Assembly: GCA_002794465.1 (NCBI GenBank)
Contig: MTSL01000057.1
Location: forward strand, 473 to 12,277
From: Paramicrosporidium saccamoebae KSL3
Lineage: Eukaryota; Fungi; Cryptomycota
Length of the DNA stretch: 11,805 nucleotides
Reading direction: 5' to 3'
Shown: positions 2,764 through 11,652 of the stretch, piece by piece
Position numbering within the stretch: position 1 is the first letter of the stretch
How the letters are laid out: each line of letters starts with the position of its first letter
Translations under genes and position numbers: made by a program
Notes under the pieces: generated by a model
The model's input: the letters and a program-made list of their open reading frames with translations, nothing else
Databases searched by the model: none
Told to the model about the DNA's origin: nothing

Positions 2764-5700
2764 TTATTTGGGACATGTGTGGGAGCGAAAGAAATGTGAC
2801 AGTCCCCAAAGCGCAGGAATTAGGGTGAGAATAAAGTCGTTAGTCTCTGCGGCCAGTTCTGTCCAGTCGAGAACAAAGGACAACTCCATCTCGTGTTTGT
2901 CCCTAATATCCTGAAACAATCCCGTGGTCACATTATGGCCAGTATACTCGGTAACCTGTATGATCGTAACCTGGAGGCGCTGCAGCAAGGAGATGGGAAT
3001 AGAGTTGAGTTGTGGATGCTGCTCAAGGAACCTAGTGATGGCGCGAATATTTCCAAAACCATACTTTTCCCCGCGACTGCATCGAACCATTACATGGTCG
3101 CACTCCCTGAATTTTGGAGCTAGCCGGAGGTTGACTATAGGAGTATCAGCATGTTCCACTCTTTCGACTACTCCTCTTTTGATGAGTTCCTTGACGTCAG
3201 TGGACGTGTCGGCCGTCATGTCCATGTCCACCGATTTCGCAGAGGACAGAACAAATCTGTAATCGCGACCATTGCTTTCCCTTCCTTTTACGTCAATATT
3301 CATCCATCGAAGCGGCCTGTATCTCATCCTCGTAAACTGTAATTGGTCGTCGTAAATGATCTGAAATTCAGAGTTTCCGTTGGCCGCCGAATTGAATAGC
3401 GCCAAAGATACCGCGTAGCCGGATAACCGGCCAGTACTGATCATTCCAATCTTTGCCAAGAATGACAGTACCACAGACTCGTCGCTGACAAATGGCTCAA
3501 AGGAACTATTCATGGCAGCGAGAGTGCTCTTTTTTTTAACCACGGGCTTTGTGTGTTTTGGTTCTTCATTCTCGTCGGGCTCTATGCGCAGGCTATCCAC
3601 TGGCGCGGGCTCAATTGGACTCTTTTCTTCTGCTTTGGCAAAATCCAAATCGACTCCAGCGCTCCTTCTCTTGAAATACTGCTCGGTCGAGGAATCACCC
3701 AGTGCTTTGTAGCCAAGTCGAAGCGCCTCTTGCACTCGATTGACAGTTGCCGACGTTCCATCCTCAAGGAAGAGTCGTGGAAGATTAGTTACATACAAAT
3801 TTCCAAACTTGATCGCAGCCTTGATTATCCCAAACTCTTCAGATCCCATCCTTCTGGCGAGATCTAACTGACGATAAGCATGACTGAAAAACTCTTGATA
3901 AAGAAATCCCTTTAGGCACAGCGGATCGAGCTTGTCAAAACTCTGCAGTACCGGAACGTAACACTGAGCATCAAAGTGCTGTGGTCTCCTACTCCCATGA
4001 TGCATATCAAAGTTGATGGAATCCATTTTCGTTTTACTGTCATCAAACAGCAGGGTACTGGATCCTTCCAGAAACACCGATGCGGCTAATCCATGTCTTC
4101 TTACTAGTCTAGGCCTCTTGCTTCTAAGTGCTAGCTCCATCTCTACATCAGGGGAATGCGATACTTCCCATAAGCTGGAAATGTTTAATGTCTGGGCTAG
4201 CAACTGATATGCCTGGAAAGAGTACTCTCTCAGATGCACGACTCCATTCTTACCCACATGAATATCGCTGGATAATCCTCTCCTAATTGTCTCCTCACTC
4301 TCAAATGCAAAGTGGTGTAAAATTTTCAGCACGCATTCTCCCAAGTCGCGGACTTTGTGTTCCTCAAAGGACCCCAAGCTCTTGGCATGCTCATTGACAT
4401 GGGAAATTTCTGCAGAAATGTTTTCAAAGCTGGGCGCGGCAGCATCAGGAATGGCTAGTCCGCCAATATCCAATGCACAGAGGGCAAGCGATAGGGAAGA
4501 CATCTTTCCGCTATGCCGGGTACTTGATCGTACCAAGGTCTGCGCACGGGCCCACCTTAGTAGGACAAGAACAATTGCCAAGTTTCCCGGATCCATTATC
4601 GTCATTTTACAGAGTCTTAGCGCTGGCAAATGCCAATCAATATTACGGAATATGGTAAAGACATAGGGCGAACCACGATGTTCCAATGTACTGGGGTGTT
4701 TGACCATCGGGAATGTGCTATTTAAAGCAGTGTAAACTTGCCCAAAGAGAACCTCTTCAGAAACGTCCATGTAAACATTGATATCTGAACCGGCTCTGTT
4801 TGCCAGTCCGATAGTTGAGCCAGAGAGTTCGATGCAGACGTTATCGCCAACGATCGTTTTTAATAGTTCCTTGAGGAGATTGAAAAAATTTCGGCATTCC
4901 ACCAAATTTCCGCTTACCTCATGCTTGATACAGTCTTGCGCCCATTGAACGACTTGCTGGCCTAGTATCCCCACTGCATCGGCACGCATGGCAATGGTGC
5001 CATTTTTCTCGCGTGCTTCAATCAAGTAATCAGTGACAATCCATGGAAAGCTTAACACTGGCTCAACCAAGCCTCTTGGCTTGATGGGCTCATGATAGGT
5101 TACGTAGTACCAAGCAGAGGCCTTAGCTGGTAGCTCTTCCTTGGGGACATTTGCACAAAAATTACTCCGATAAAGTGCACAAGTCTCCTTCAGTTTGGTA
5201 CTGACAATCTACAAAATGAGACTAAACTGAACGACTGACGTACTTCCATGATCCTGCGAGATTCGTCTATACCCATCATTTCAGGCTCTAGTCTGGAACC
5301 CGAGAACACTTGAGCTTCCGATCCAAACCCGTACAACCGCAGAACTCCATTCAGGCAATCGCAATAGTCTCGATACGAGTCTCTTGCTGATGGCAGATAT
5401 TTTTCGTAGCCAGCAACCAGAAATGCACTGTCCGGTTTGATCTCACGATGACCAGTGGCTGAATAAAAAATGCTCTTTGCCTTTCTGTACATTTGTCCAG
5501 TCACTTTTTGTGAGACATGGGTTGTCATTCCTTGTTTTTGCATAAAATCAGGCCAGCTGATGGGTCGATGTTCCTTTGGAAAGTCTGGAAGAATTCCAGT
5601 CTTGGGGAAATCGACTGCAAGTGAGCAGAGGTAGGCAAGATGGACGCACACCGGATCCCTTACGCCGTCAGGCTTGACATCGGCATGGGCAATATGTGCA

Positions 5701-8700
5701 TTCGAGATTGGTCCAAGCTGATCAACAGAAATGAATTTGACGAGAAACTCTCGAATATCTGCAGTGGTAACTTGCTCTGTGACCACTTTTGCCGGCGGGG
5801 CTGCATAATCCATAGGCTCAACACTGGTGGGCAAAAGTAGTGCCGGATCCCAAGTTACAAAATACAAGTCACCGTCAAGGTCAGACCCAGAACACATGTC
5901 AGTGAGTGGACGAGGACCTTTACGAGGAAACACGACGCAATCAAAGTGGAATCTTTGCAAAAGTTCATTATCGACTGCCCGCAGCCTTCTGGCATCACCA
6001 GGATGCATGCAAGGATTCTTTGCCATTGACACTTCAGAGACTACCTTCCAGCATCCCTCTCTTCCAGGCCTTAAAATCCCCAGACGTACCGCTTCCTCAT
6101 CCGATGGCTGCTTACTAATCTGCACAAAAACTTCATTCTCCTTCAAGGTTCCCGTTTCATCGATGACACCCATGATAATCCTCCCCATCGGGACAAAAAC
6201 TCGGGATCGCGTCAATAAATCGACAAGTCGACGTCTGTAGACTGTAATCAGCAACGAGCGAAAAAATGGCTCAGAATCAAGACTCCAGGATTGGATAACC
6301 TTGGAAGATAGTGGAGAGAGAACCCTGAGATTGCTTTCTAGCCAACTGGAGGATTCTGTCGAGTTGAGCAGCATATTCGGCATGCTCTTTAGCATTTGGT
6401 CTTGCAGATTCATGAATGCTTCGTCAGGGACGCCCAGACTGCTGAAAATTACTAAAACTTGCCGATTCAAATAGCATGGAATGTAAGCAGACCAATTGAG
6501 GACCTCCAGGGTGCGGTGAGATGATTCAAACTTTTGCATGGACGGACGAAACCAAATTCTTTTGTCTTCGCTAGCAGTCGTGGAATCGGGACGGATCGCT
6601 AGCACGCCCTTGAAGCCCGCAAATCTTATTTGGAATGCAGTTGGAATGGTCGAAAATCCCATGCGATCAGAAATGGCCTTTGCAAGTCCATATGTTATCA
6701 TTCCAATTCCATCAGAATAGGTATATGTCCTGTCAATTCCGTCGACCGTTGTGGTTACTTCATAATCCGGAACTATTGTAGAATCATGGAGTTCAATTTC
6801 TGCAACGTCAATAGACGCCGACAGGCTGTGGCCAAGACGTGCCACGTACTTTGCAACATTTTTGATCGAAGAAAAATCGCCACACCAACGGCGAATATAA
6901 TCGGCATCAACGTGAACATCTTGAACAGAACCCCCCTCTCCAGGAACCCGGATTAAATGCGGGGCAACAAACCAACATCCATGATCACGTAACTGACTGG
7001 ATGACATTGCCAGGAATTCATACCTACGATCCCCAATCGCAGTTCCCTCGCACAGAAAATTCGAAATGCGATTATGAACATTTTTGATGCTTGCGCCAGT
7101 CTTTGCCATGCTCAGCTTCTGCATGTCCTCATCCCTGAAATGGACTCGAAGAAAATAGTCCGAATCAAATGCACGCAAAATTCGGTTCCGAGTAATCTTT
7201 TTGGGGTGCTGGAATACAAGTCGAGTGGGTGTCAAGATTACGAACCGCACTAGAGCAGTGTTGTGAGCCTTGTCATATTGAATATTTGAAGACTCGTACA
7301 ACAGATTCGTCTGAGTCTGGATCATTTCATGCGTGAGCGACGCTAGTGAGGCATGTGCAGTGAGCATGACATTGGCAAATCGACAATTTTGCAATCTCAA
7401 AATCATATCCATCATTAAACGATGTCTCAATTCCGGGCGGACACTTGTCAAAAAGCTCAAGAACAAGGCACTTGGGGTCCGGTACAGCAATGATTCCATG
7501 CAAGTGGACATTAGCACATGAACATCGCACTTGAATTCAAAATTGTCTACGGTAGTTGAGAGCTGAAACAGATCATGAGCGCAAAGATCTCCCTGTCGGG
7601 GCTCAAGGGTGCTGAACCGTCCGTAAACGACATGCAGGCCACGAATCTCAATCTTCCTCAGAGTATTGACAAGATGATCACGAACATTGTTAGTGAGGAA
7701 CATGTCAATCTTGTACACTGACACTTCTTCAATATTGATAAACTCGGCAATCTCTGCAGAGGAAGCTCTGTACCATTCGAATCGATCAATGGTCACCAGC
7801 TTCACCTCCATGGTGGAATCAGTGTGAGCATAATAATACATTGCTGGTGACTTGAGAGACAGGTACATTGACGTTGCCTTTTCATCACTCCCCAAGTCGA
7901 TTGCAATAAAGTTGTCAAGGATGGTGAAGCAAAAATCAATTCGGAAGACGCGGTCACTGGACACCATGAATACTTGGATCTCCTCCATCCCAACATTAAA
8001 CACCACCTTGACAGTCGATGGTAAGGATCGCAGACAGACAAATTCGCATGGAGTCGCAAAAGTCCCCAGATCAATGTTCTCTCCAACCAACATTATCTGG
8101 TCAGCAATTCGAGAAAACGACCTTTCCGTCTTGAATGACATTAAAATGTGATCCTCTGAAAGCAGTTCACTCGTACTGCAGACAAGCTTGGCAATCTCAG
8201 GAATCCTGAAAGCCGAGTTGCTAGACGGCTCTGCATTAAGACGCATGAGCATTTTCCCAGAAAATACAGGGTCTTCCTCAACAACAGACACAAAGTTCTT
8301 CAAGGGCAGCTCTGACAAAAATGGGAACGAATCAAGCGTCCAATTGGACACTTCTCCCACGAGATTGTGGAATCGCATCTGAATGGTTCTGAATCTTTTC
8401 CGGACGTCTTCTGAGGAATTGCTGTCTGCGCCGAGAGAAAGCTCATAATCAGACCTGGTCCAATTAAGCGCAAGACTGGCCTGAATGTTCAATTGCAGAG
8501 TGGTGAGGGCGGAGATGGACCGAGTAGTCTTCTCGGCAGCCATATGTTGGAGAATGACGTGATGCATAGTCTTTTCTGATGCAATTAATTCTTGGTAGGA
8601 GATTCTTTCCGCTTCACTACAAATCAAAACATAGCGACTGTCATTGGCTCTAGCGCGACCCCGGGATTGAATAAAACTCGTCAGGGTCCACGACTGATCA

Positions 8701-10530
8701 AATAATATGACGTTATTGCAGACAGGGACATCGATTCCCTCCTGCAGAACACTGGTTGAAATTAGCAACTTGTGTTCGCCAGTGCGAAACTTTTGCAAAA
8801 CTGGCGACTGGTGATCAGCCCACGACATGCCGTCAAGCTGTCCTGCGCTTTGACCAACAAAAAAGGTAGGCTTCCATTTTGTATCAATCCCTTCATGGTC
8901 GACCAAAACACGACAGAGGTACCGAGCAGTCTTTTTAGTTTGTACAAATACAATGGCTCTCGTCGTGTCATTCACCTCGATACTCGAGAGCACGGAAAAA
9001 AGAGTGGATACTTTATCGGAGAGAGAATCGGCGCCCTTGATCGTCTGCAAAAACGTAGATGCTGTCTCGGAAGAGTTTGCTGACAGCAACTCTTGAATAT
9101 AGATGCGAGCATATTTGGGACCCAGAATGCTGTTCAACTCTTCGGCAGTGAATATCTGTTGGATCTGTAAAAGCAGTCCTACGGCGTCATTGTTCTTTGA
9201 ATCGTGTGCCTTGGCTATGAGCGATCTCAAAAGACCGCGAGCCTGGCCTGTTCCATCTAGTTTGTCAATGCCTACTGTCCACGGCAACTCCATTTTTTCC
9301 CGAATCGTTTTTATAAGACCTTTACAATAGTCCAAAATTGCGCTGGCCATCTCACGACATTCGTCGGTAGTCTCCACAGTGTGGAATGTAATAGACGGCC
9401 TATTGATTGTCTCCATCAAATCTTTCCAAAAAATAAAAGGCATAAAGATCTGGGCTTCCATCAGGTCACACAAGATTCCCAATCCAACATTCATCGAAAC
9501 TGGGTCGCCTGAAACTGGAGATGCCGACAGACCGAGAAGAAGAGGTCGATACTTGACATCGGTGGTCCTGTAGCATCGATTAACGAGCACAGAATATGGA
9601 TGGTTCTTGACAGTATGGTGCACTTCATCCAAAACAAGCAGACTGACATCTTCCAGTCTAAGATATTTACCCTGAATCCAATTGATGAGAACTTGCGCAG
9701 TCACGACAATGGCATCGTGATCTCGAAGCTTCTTTAACGAAATCTCATCACTGTTCTCTCCTACAACAATGAGGTCTTTAATGGGCAGTACCACACGCAA
9801 TAAGCACGCTCAAGCTAGTCTGCTCGCTGAAATATTGGCCTTGCTGGAATGCCAACGGCACTCGTTCTACAACAAAAAGGACGATTTTTGCGGGATTGAG
9901 GCGATGCATAAAGCTTGCCAGCATTGCAGCAATCAGAGTCTTACCAGCACCAGTTGGTAGATACACAACAGTGTTCCGTTGTGCGGCATTCACAAAACAC
10001 TCGATCTGATACGGCCTCGGCTTATCGCGCGCCAACTCGCGCAGAACAACCTGGGCAAGGTCGGGGATAGTTGGAATGTAAACCGGCGTTGCATGTGTCG
10101 CAAGGTCATACACCTCACCCTTTCCAAGAGTTTCTGAATAGCCTCTTTCTATAATCCCAGGCACAAAACGCTTGACGGTAGCCCATTTTCCCGCAAACTC
10201 TCGGTCACCTTGTCTTAGGGTGGTCACGGTGCTCCGAAAGCAACACGTATTCTCTCGTCGAAACCCTATGACGTTCATACTGCCAATAATTTCCTGGCAG
10301 ACTACACATCCGACTTCATGAGACGATATGGGCCGCCTTTTTTCATCAGATTGTGGGGCCAGGAAGACTGGGGAGCTTGGCTCGGAGAAAAATGCATCTT
10401 GGCATTCAAGCCGTATACAAAGATTCAACCCATTGCCTTGATTACTGAAGAAACAGAGCATGTCCGCCGTAATCAATGTGGACCGACATTTGTTACAAAC
10501 AAGATGCGTGCTGTGGGGCTCTACATTCAT
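2764..10530 (-). CDS. Multidomain RNAi protein, ~2566 aa: Zn domain + RIG-I/Dicer-family DExH helicase + eukaryotic RNA-dependent RNA polymerase + nucleotidyltransferase-like domain + C-terminal beta-rich domain
   Basis: Exons 10530-9792 (739 nt), 9760-5244 (4517 nt) and 5208-2764 (2445 nt) total 7701 nt, or 2566 aa plus stop. Junction 1 gives SVLIAC-G-ENSDEI inside the first RecA lobe. Junction 2 gives RRIME|IVSTKLK...AKASAWYYVTYH...VLSFPWI, the conserved C-terminal head motif of cellular RdRPs, in frame with the 768-aa ORF. Confidence 0.9.
4170..4910 (-). other. Pol-beta-superfamily nucleotidyltransferase of Cid1/TUTase/Trf4 type plus PAP-associated-like helices, probably catalytically degenerate
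   Basis: CIELSGS-x10-DIN (GS at 4816-4821, DIN at 4777-4785) parallels the family motif FGS-x10-DxD. IVLVLLRWARAQTL...GKMSSLSLALCAL parallels LxxxxKxWAkxxgl...GxLSSYxLxLM. DLGECVLKILHHFAF parallels SLGxLLxxFFxYY. Confidence 0.7.
5040..8395 (-). other. Full-length eukaryotic RNAi RdRP (RDR/QDE-1/EGO-1 family) with N-terminal accessory region, catalytic core and head
   Basis: LTPTRL...NRILR...FLRVHFRDED; YEFLAMSSSQLRDHGCWF; KYVARLGHSLS; YSDGIGMI; AFQIRFAGFKGVL; RPSMQKF; LNRQ; MGVIDETGTL; KNPCMHPGD; catalytic CSGSDLDGDLYFVTWD (DLDGD at 5868-5882); AVDFPKTG; KASAWY; LSFPW. Confidence 0.97.
5209..5243 (-). other. Spliceosomal intron, 35 nt, phase 0 (RdRP-fusion intron 2)
   Basis: GTACGT...CTCATTTTGTAG; removal restores the conserved RdRP head motif and links to the nucleotidyltransferase exon. 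Confidence 0.92.
8560..10026 (-). other. SF2 DExH helicase of the RIG-I/Dicer/DRH family, with insertion domain
   Basis: Q motif PRPYQ; motif I LPTGAGKT (~9937-9960); Ia VERVPLAFQQ; Ib VVTAQVL; II DEVHH (9615-9629); KNHPY; III GLSASP; IV AIVFVQTKKTA; V STSVLQEGIDVPVCN; VI FIQSRGRAR (~8648-8675). All motifs are intact. Confidence 0.95.
9761..9791 (-). other. Spliceosomal intron, 31 nt, phase 1 (RdRP-fusion intron 1)
   Basis: GTACTG...CTCATTGTTGTAG; removal joins helicase motifs Q/I/Ia to Ib/II. Confidence 0.92.
10165..10509 (-). other. N-terminal Zn-binding domain, RLR-CTR/Yippee/CULT-like fold
   Basis: Two CxxC pairs (HLVCNKCRSTLI at C12/C15; HEVGCVVCQEIIG at C75/C78) separated by beta-type segments, ending in GKWATV. 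This recalls RIG-I CTD LLCRKC...IFC..NC..DWG...SKWKDF. Recognised by eye only. Confidence 0.6.
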
Positions 10531-11095: not shown

Positions 11096-11652
11096 ATGAC
11101 CCAGGCGTTCGGTCAACACTTACTTCGCTCGTCCGAGATATTTTTCCGCTCTGCACTGTCCGTCGGCTTTGTCAACCTAAAGCCCATCCTTCCGGGACGT
11201 ATTATTGATGTTAAGACTAAGAGTAGATGTCCTGGTAATACCACGGAGGGTGGTGCACAGATTCACCGATTTGACACCAGAGGAAGTATCGGACCTCTTT
11301 GTCTCTGCCCAGCGGATAGCTCGTGTGGTTGAGCGTGAATATGGGGGAAGTTCATTGACTATTGCCATCCAAGACGGTCCTGAGGCCGGACAATCGGTCC
11401 ACGTATGCTCTGCTGAGTTTTTTAAATTCTAGCACGTACATGTCCACATATTGCCACGAAAGAAGGGCGATTTTGCTAAAAACGACGACATTTATGACGA
11501 GGTATCCAATCACCTACTGGCGCTGACAATAGCTAAATTCATGGAACAAGTTGGATAACGATGCGAGGAAACCCAGGACGCAGGAAGAAATGTCCCGTGA
11601 GGCGTCACATCTCTATCGTCATTTCCAAACCGATCAGGATTTAAAGAAATGA
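11096..11652 (+). CDS. FHIT: Fhit/Hnt2 bis(5'-adenosyl)-triphosphatase (HIT family), 4 exons, ~155 aa
   Basis: Exons 11096-11198, 11227-11402, 11433-11501 and 11533-11652 give [19 protein letters not shown]...[17 protein letters not shown]...[36 protein letters not shown]...RKPRTQEEM. The HxHxH triad and the Fhit-specific [12 protein letters not shown] and ND.IY.EL motifs are present. Confidence 0.95.
11199..11226 (+). other. Spliceosomal intron, 28 nt (FHIT intron 1)
   Basis: GTATTA...ACTAAG-AGTAG; removal restores PG-H-VLV. Confidence 0.92.
11403..11432 (+). other. Spliceosomal intron, 30 nt, phase 0 (FHIT intron 2)
   Basis: GTATGC...TTCTAG; removal restores QSVH|HVHVHIL, and the terminal TAG is an in-frame stop if retained. 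Confidence 0.92.
11502..11532 (+). other. Spliceosomal intron, 31 nt, phase 0 (FHIT intron 3)
   Basis: GTATCC...GCTGAC-AATAG; removal gives IYDE|[10 protein letters not shown]. Confidence 0.85.

Follow-up and report, generated by a model that had tools for sequence, protein, structure and literature searches.

The stretch of DNA analysed here (the window, 11,805 nucleotides [nt]) comes from the cryptomycotan fungus Paramicrosporidium saccamoebae KSL3 and corresponds to positions 473 to 12,277 of the forward strand of contig MTSL01000057.1 (assembly GCA_002794465.1). Its minus strand carries a gene for a eukaryotic RNA-dependent RNA polymerase (RdRP), which is flanked by genes for a WD40 protein and a HIT-family protein. 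The domain order in the single chain encoded by the RdRP gene is a zinc domain resembling the C-terminal domain (CTD) of the RIG-I-like receptors (RLRs) as well as DRH proteins, a Dicer/RLR-type helicase, a middle region, the RdRP and a nucleotidyltransferase (NTase)-like tail (Table 1). The main subject is the first of these domains. Residues 8-136 are probably a non-animal counterpart of the RLR/DRH CTD that binds RNA, in a protein that would combine on one chain the parts of a silencing amplifier resembling the RNA-directed RNA polymerase complex (RDRC).

Table 1. Coordinates of the RdRP gene and of the parts of its product (positions are those of the window; residues are those of the spliced protein)
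Feature	Position	Strand	Remarks
Exons 1, 2 and 3	10530-9792, 9760-5244, 5208-2764	-	
Beta-tent C4-zinc domain, RLR/DRH-CTD-like, residues 8-136	10123..10509	-	AlphaFold2 model, Foldseek, hhalign, 47-hit family
First zinc knuckle, C12-N-K-C15	10486..10497	-	turn between strands 8-12 and 18-21; aligns with RIG-I C810/C813
Basic loop, K64-R65-R66-P67	10330..10341	-	between strands 55-59 and 69-75 (beta5-beta6 position)
Second zinc knuckle, C75-V-V-C78	10297..10308	-	between strands 69-75 and 81-88; aligns with RIG-I C864/C869
K115-W116, counterpart of the RLR/DRH KWK motif	10183..10188	-	aligns with RIG-I K907/W908 in every comparison
I126-I-E-R129, family I-E-x-R motif at the domain end	10144..10155	-	strand 127-129 in the AlphaFold2 model
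Linker, residues 137-165	10036..10122	-	pLDDT 57-61 after residue 130 in the AlphaFold2 model; length differs among homologues
Dicer/RLR-type superfamily 2 helicase, residues ~166-650	8550..10035	-	Pfam DEAD, ResIII and Helicase_C (residues 170-616); interrupted by intron 1
Intron 1, 31 nt	9761..9791	-	GTACTG...TTGTAG; excision joins the frames as ...LIACG|ENSDE...
Middle region, residues ~650-1088	~7236-8549	-	~440 residues
Eukaryotic cellular RdRP, residues 1089-1673	5481..7235	-	PF05183, E 1.6e-166, profile positions 1-581 of 582
Intron 2, 35 nt	5209..5243	-	GTACGT...TTGTAG; tblastn alignments of homologue P0157 meet at 5241 and 5208 in different frames
Exon 3	2764..5208	-	RdRP end (...AWYYVTY) and NTase-like C-terminal region of about 780-800 residues
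NTase-like motif G-S-T-I-G-L-A-N-R-A-G-S-D-I-N, residues 1882-1896	4777-4821	-	

The N-terminal zinc domain and its relatives

The zinc domain lies at the start of the protein, about 30 residues ahead of the helicase. The first-pass annotation, which was made from the letters of the window, had described two CxxC motifs and a KW pair upstream of a RIG-I-family helicase, at 10165-10509 (residues 8-122). These features are indeed present as C12/C15, C75/C78 and K115-W116, and their spacing is RLR-like: the KW pair lies 37 residues past C78 in the window protein and 38 past C869 in human RIG-I. The third position of the KWK motif is an alanine. The conserved domain is longer than first noted and extends to about residue 136 (window 10123), the additional part holding a conserved I-E-x-R...F-Y-G segment. 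The invariant G83, which follows the second knuckle, aligns with G874 of RIG-I. The reversed order relative to RLRs was likewise confirmed, as residues 8-136 precede helicase motif I (PTGAGKT, residues 192-198). The domain is present once in residues 1-1752 of a two-exon, 1769-residue model, the part that was scanned for a second copy and that ends ahead of exon 3.

Relatives of the domain were collected with a profile built from the N-terminal domains of the window protein and two homologues, which was searched against 1.84 billion representative proteins at E<=1e-3. A longer query and the profile were needed for this, as a word-indexed homologue search with the N-terminus gave a single fragment. 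The profile search returned 47 proteins, and the CxxC/KW pattern is therefore not a chance one. One of the 47, P0121, was a false positive whose match was driven by repeats, and it was dropped. The conservation figures given here were taken from 39 aligned members. Each of the four zinc ligands is strongly conserved (C12 in 37, C15 in 35 or 90%, C75 in 38 and C78 in 37 of the 39, which places C12, C75 and C78 at 95-97%), as are G83 (39/39, 100%) and W116 (38/39, 97%); I126 is found in 30.

In nearly all relatives the domain occupies the extreme N-terminus and is followed by the helicase sequence PRxYQ...LPTGxGKT. The complete proteins that were checked (P0120, P0128, P0131, P0136 and P0157) all contain domain, helicase and RdRP in that order, and the same order was recovered at loci L003, L004 and L005 after split gene calls were joined. 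Named members come from the chytrid Phlyctochytrium planicorne and the streptophyte algae Mesotaenium and Mesostigma; in the Mesostigma protein, P0138 (677 residues), nothing beyond the domain and the N-lobe of the helicase is seen. The GC content of the host loci, among them those of several environmental eukaryotes, lies between 28% and 64%. The domain-helicase-RdRP architecture is thus conserved across distant and diverse eukaryotes.

Several members deserve separate mention. The Phlyctochytrium protein, P0128 (KAJ3108457.1, 2667 residues), carries domain, helicase, RdRP and NTase, and is labelled at NCBI as "Interferon-induced helicase C domain-containing protein 1" (MDA5), a label that reflects helicase similarity alone. 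At locus L004 (8264-15846, 28% GC) an AT-rich homologue shows the entire architecture in one frame. A variant genetic code was considered there and ruled out: all three in-frame stops fall within codons 323-336, as an in-frame intron would explain. In four proteins, P0133 (321 residues), P0137 (185 residues), P0139 and P0150, the domain occurs without a detectable helicase; it runs into an acidic, low-complexity tail in P0133 and into a hydrophobic C-terminus in P0137. They could be stand-alone forms or else gene calls that are cut short.

An AlphaFold2 model of residues 1-149, made with the 39-sequence alignment, reached a predicted local distance difference test score (pLDDT) of 90 and a predicted template-modelling score (pTM) of 0.81. 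In this model, the two knuckles fall at beta1-2 and beta6-7, with the KRR loop between beta5 and beta6, a layout that matches the one described for the CTDs of DRH-3 and of RLRs (PMC8464030). When the model was compared by Foldseek to the PDB, ranks 1-17 were all RLR/DRH CTDs (E 1e-5 to 4e-4), with DRH-1 first at E 1e-5, followed by the DRH-3 CTD, the LGP2 regulatory domain (RD), the RIG-I CTD and MDA5. The first Mis18 structure came at rank 18, and cereblon isoform 4 followed at 37 (E 7.8e-4). To see whether the ranking depends on the sequence chosen, P0123, the most Yippee-like member in Pfam, was modelled as well. Its model (pLDDT 89) placed RLR/DRH CTDs at ranks 1-30, including MDA5 at 1.3e-5, and Mis18 first at 31. 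In both models, then, the top matches are RLR/DRH CTDs and not an unrelated zinc finger. Across the two, the RLR/DRH CTD matches have E-values of 1e-5 to 6e-4 and template-modelling (TM) scores, normalised to the target, of 0.5-0.67. A Foldseek search of the viral structure library BFVD, used as a negative control, gave no match.

Profile-to-profile comparison agrees over the length of the domain. The sequences of the human RIG-I, MDA5 and LGP2 CTDs were verified against PDB chains beforehand. Using hhalign, the family aligned end to end with an alignment of the three CTDs (Prob 91.4%, E 8.9e-7, 110 columns), and with each of them singly: MDA5 at E 1.1e-4 (105 columns), LGP2 at 5.8e-4 (106 columns) and RIG-I at 0.023 (98 columns). 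For scale, the accepted DRH-3 CTD matches the MDA5 and LGP2 CTDs at only E 0.16 and 1.1. On the strength of the models, the domain is very probably a C4-zinc beta-tent domain of the RLR/DRH-CTD kind.

Several results weigh against so close a tie to the RLR CTDs. The TM-scores are moderate (0.5-0.65). The window protein matches neither the RIG-I_C-RD (PF11648) nor the Yippee-Mis18 (PF03226) Pfam model, and single-sequence searches of Pfam and the PDB with residues 1-163 gave nothing significant. Pfam does not favour either family at E<=1, each being matched by 25 of the 39 members. When ten members were scored singly, only P0123 exceeded the Yippee-Mis18 cut-off (29.1 against 26.6 bits); for RIG-I_C-RD (cut-off 25.6 bits) only P0132 did so, at 30.4, with P0131 at 23.7. 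Against PDB sequences, the family profile matched S. pombe Mis18 best (1.2e-3), followed by Mis18-alpha (0.04), RIG-I (0.12) and MDA5 (0.13). At three of the positions most conserved in the family, moreover, the window copy has a different residue: H36N (10423-10425), P41L (10408-10410) and P90F (10261-10263), where the consensus residue is found in 35, 25 and 35 of the 39 members, respectively. These replacements may explain why the window copy has no Pfam match; the zinc ligands, basic loop, KW pair and R129 are all retained.

By sequence alone, then, the family is equally near RIG-I_C-RD and Yippee/Mis18. This bears on an alternative in which the domain is a Yippee/Mis18-type beta-tent, serving not to bind RNA but, like the Yippee domain of Mis18, as a protein-protein or oligomerisation module, which here would dimerise the enzyme or recruit partners. 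The PDB profile matches to the two Mis18 proteins and the Pfam scores just given speak for it, and Mis18 structures are significant in Foldseek, with a TM-score normalised to the target of about 0.7. However, Mis18 stands behind 17 and 30 RLR/DRH CTD chains in the two models, and its TM-score normalised to the query is 0.45-0.49 versus 0.50-0.62 for those chains. The hhalign match to the Yippee domain of Mis18-alpha (E 7e-3) covers only 40 columns, all in the second half, with a Prob of 5%, compared to 98-110 columns for the RLR CTDs. Yippee matches in Pfam mostly end at profile positions 70-102 of 108, leaving the conserved KW/IExR tail uncovered, and RIG-I_C-RD matches usually span positions 2-115 of 117. 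Further, the conserved KKRR loop, the KW pair and the fusion to a Dicer/RLR helicase suit RNA binding better than a Yippee/Mis18 role. The first-pass annotation had listed this fold as an alternative, and it survives in part: structural rank and alignment coverage argue against it, while the equal Pfam counts and the best PDB match of the profile, Mis18, leave it a serious candidate at the level of sequence. As an account of function, we regard it as unlikely. Our reading is that the domain is a beta-tent zinc domain which, in sequence space, would lie between RIG-I_C-RD and Yippee/Mis18, and that it agrees with the RLR/DRH CTD in fold, in full-length correspondence and in its C-terminal KW segment.

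A candidate RNA-binding surface

In DRH-3, RIG-I and LGP2, the beta5-beta6 loop binds the 5'-triphosphate, and in DRH-3 the KWK motif touches the RNA backbone (PMC8464030). The putative counterparts of both are basic in the family. Lysine or arginine is found at K64 in 74% of the 39 members, at R65 in 72%, at R66 in 69% and at position 67 in 59%, so that a K-K/R-K/R-K/R loop is conserved at the beta5-beta6 position. The figures for K115, R40 and R129 are 69%, 90% and 92%, respectively. A triphosphate pocket made of K14, R16, R91, R92, R99 and K115 had been suggested from the sequence of the window. Of these only K115 withstands comparison with the family, as the other five are basic in few members (28%, 31%, 31%, 18% and 26%, in the order named).

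The correspondence to RIG-I is looser at the level of single residues, and this counts against the reading of the domain as an RNA-binding counterpart of the RLR/DRH CTD. The K64-R66 loop aligns with the PHPKPK segment of RIG-I (849-851), with a register that shifts by about 2 residues between runs, and the residue-level alignment to RIG-I K849-K861 is unstable. In addition, several triphosphate contacts of RIG-I are without a counterpart in the alignment; opposite K888 stands C97, and K858 is part of a RIG-I-specific insertion.

The proposed role of the domain follows the DRH-3 CTD, which prefers 5'-triphosphate double-stranded RNA resembling RdRP products and works with RRF-1/EGO-1 (PMC8464030). 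It is somewhat more probable than otherwise that the zinc domain of the window protein binds RNA. The K64-R66 loop and K115-W116 would hold an RNA end or backbone beside the helicase. In this manner, the domain would keep the helicase-RdRP attached to the template, or else to its own de novo product at the 5'-triphosphate duplex end, a part ascribed to the DRH-3 CTD in the nematode RdRP module. A specific preference for the 5'-triphosphate is the least secure step of this proposal, and one that we put forward only tentatively.

A different role would be that of an autoinhibitory or regulatory lid in the style of the RIG-I "repressor domain". Here, the domain would dock onto the helicase or RdRP and be released by a ligand, with RNA-end recognition being secondary or absent. 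RLR CTDs are regulatory as well as sensory, and the flexible linker of about 30 residues and low pLDDT that joins the domain to Hel1 is also in its favour. Activation of the ATPase by the RD, cited in Lupas et al. 2015 (PMC4287342), can be counted for it as well. The lid is, however, compatible with RNA binding rather than opposed to it, and as a separate explanation it is improbable. Least credible of all is a beta-tent of CULT or MsrB type that binds a small molecule or a modified residue, the CULT fold having also been proposed in the first-pass annotation: MsrB and cereblon isoform 4 are among the weak sequence matches (E 0.1-1.8) and the structure matches (rank 37), but they rank below RLR CTDs and Mis18 in every test, and W116 is the only conserved tryptophan, so that the three-tryptophan CULT cage is absent.

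Gene structure, the rest of the protein and neighbouring genes

The RdRP gene begins with an ATG at position 10530. Its first open reading frame (ORF) shares part of its length with a 1536-codon ORF in a different frame, whose end is at 5190. A frameshift or pseudogene was considered as the cause of the overlap and ruled out by intron 1, which is supported by three lines of evidence. A metagenomic fragment, L001, that is 70-80% identical has a 31-nt intron of different sequence in the same place; the intron-less homologue P0003 reads through as ...PICGENSTE...; and many environmental gene calls of homologues end directly after ...ACG. Intron 2 is supported by the alignments of long homologues, which run on past the apparent stop and into the following ORF; the spliced frame stays open across the intron. 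Both mini-introns share GTAC...TTGTAG, and their excision merges three ORFs into one protein. The source genome clearly uses very short introns. The resulting product of 2566 residues is comparable in length to its homologues (2391-2667 residues).

The helicase was compared to PDB sequences using phmmer. The best matches were Arabidopsis DCL1 (E 4.7e-50) and the ancestral Dicer helicase AncD1D2 (3.3e-48, query 20-500), then DCL4, with duck RIG-I at 3.8e-40 and LGP2 at 6e-34, the last nearly end to end (query 22-491). As the best matches are to Dicer and RLR proteins, the helicase belongs to the Dicer/RLR family, and the matches cover both RecA lobes and the insertion. Judged by these scores, it is slightly nearer Dicer than RLR. 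The middle region that follows gave no Pfam match, nor was the zinc domain found there a second time. In the RdRP, the catalytic DLDGD is intact (residues 1540-1544).

The RdRP had been thought to occupy the C-terminal position in the protein. This changes once intron 2 is removed, since a further NTase-like region of about 800 residues is then added, giving the full 2566 residues. The region has homologues in the C-terminal parts of P0120, P0136 and P0157 (E to 7e-71), and in P0128 and P0131 it matches the Pfam MTPAP-like nucleotidyltransferase palm; the window's own copy has no Pfam match. Its NTase-like motif is of the D-x-N type in the window protein, P0120 and P0157, N-x-N in P0136 and the canonical D-x-D (S-D-I/V-D) in P0128 and P0131. 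Going by this motif, the nucleotidyltransferase may be catalytically dead in the clade of the window protein.

Divergently upstream of the RdRP gene lies a HIT/FHIT-like gene (HVHVHILPR) at about 11102-11576 on the plus strand. It is found in the same arrangement at two other loci, L002 (9329-9742) and L003 (2278-2751), and the close homologues there therefore represent orthologous loci. In the window copy, short introns interrupt the gene, one of them about 30 nt long. At the other end of the window, 911-2467 on the plus strand is an ORF of 518 residues with a WD40 beta-propeller and N-terminal SRE(S/F)QQQ-type repeats, which looks like an F-box/WD40 (Cdc4/FBXW7-like) protein.

Comparison with known systems and possible origin

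In RIG-I, MDA5, LGP2 and the DRH proteins, the CTD follows the helicase and pincer. In the window protein, by contrast, the domain precedes the helicase on a short, flexible linker rather than coming after Hel2 and the pincer. With the RLR/DRH CTD (PF11648) it shares the four zinc ligands in two knuckles (beta1-2 and beta6-7), the order of the strands, a basic loop at the beta5-beta6 position, a KW(K) motif equally far from the second knuckle and the physical linkage to a Dicer/RLR-type helicase. It differs in its occurrence in non-animal eukaryotes, in the score of the window copy, which is below Pfam detection, and in the lack of aligned basic counterparts to K858 and K888 of RIG-I. The family also has conserved motifs of its own that are absent from RLR CTDs, namely F-Y, H-L-x-V-K-P-E, G-P, I-E-x-R and F-Y-G. 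With Yippee/Mis18 (PF03226) and the wider beta-tent group (CULT, MsrB) it has in common two CxxC knuckles about 50-60 residues apart and pseudo-symmetric beta-hairpins, along with comparable sequence-profile scores in the case of Yippee/Mis18. The Yippee/Mis18 domain is shorter, lacks the KW/IExR tail and has the lower structural rank; we know of no fusion of it to helicases.

The nearest functional parallels are found in complexes. Taken together, the C. elegans RdRP module (DRH-3 with its 5'-triphosphate-binding CTD, and RRF-1/EGO-1) and the RDRC of fission yeast (Rdp1, the helicase Hrr1 and the NTase Cid12) have the set of activities that the window protein would have: RNA-end binding by a CTD-like domain, and those of a helicase, an RdRP and an NTase. 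In the RDRC they are on separate chains. The window protein differs from both in carrying everything on one polypeptide, with no CARD-like domain, and in an NTase-like motif that is D-x-N in its clade instead of D-x-D and may be inactive. The fusion can be read as a "Rosetta stone" of the RdRP-module and RDRC complexes. Dictyostelium RrpA-C and oomycete RDR1 likewise have a Dicer-like helicase on the N-terminal side of a PF05183 RdRP, and a literature search found no mention of an N-terminal beta-tent domain in these proteins. Within its incomplete coverage, the search also found no description of this zinc domain or arrangement in RdRP proteins. A few members of the family are already above Pfam thresholds (among the ten scored, P0132 for RIG-I_C-RD and P0123 for Yippee-Mis18).

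According to Lupas et al. 2015 (PMC4287342), the RIG-I regulatory domain can be detected in animals alone, and new beta-tent families are to be expected from poorly explored lineages. The present family suggests that the RNA-end sensor module is older than animals. A more speculative scenario, which we consider possible rather than probable, is that a Dicer/RLR helicase with a CTD-like sensor was an ancient eukaryotic module that first served small-RNA amplification by RdRPs. RLRs and DRHs would then have descended from it after the RdRP was lost and the sensor moved to the other end of the helicase, and the family would bridge the RIG-I regulatory domain and Yippee/Mis18 in sequence, as the beta-tent literature anticipated.

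The arrangement is shared by chytrids, streptophyte algae and a large number of uncultured eukaryotes. With this family, the origin of the sensor module can be addressed by phylogeny and biochemistry. As it scores equally against RIG-I_C-RD and Yippee/Mis18, it may link those beta-tent families. Finally, the protein offers a model, on one chain, of the cooperation between helicase, end sensor, polymerase and NTase in complexes of the RDRC type.

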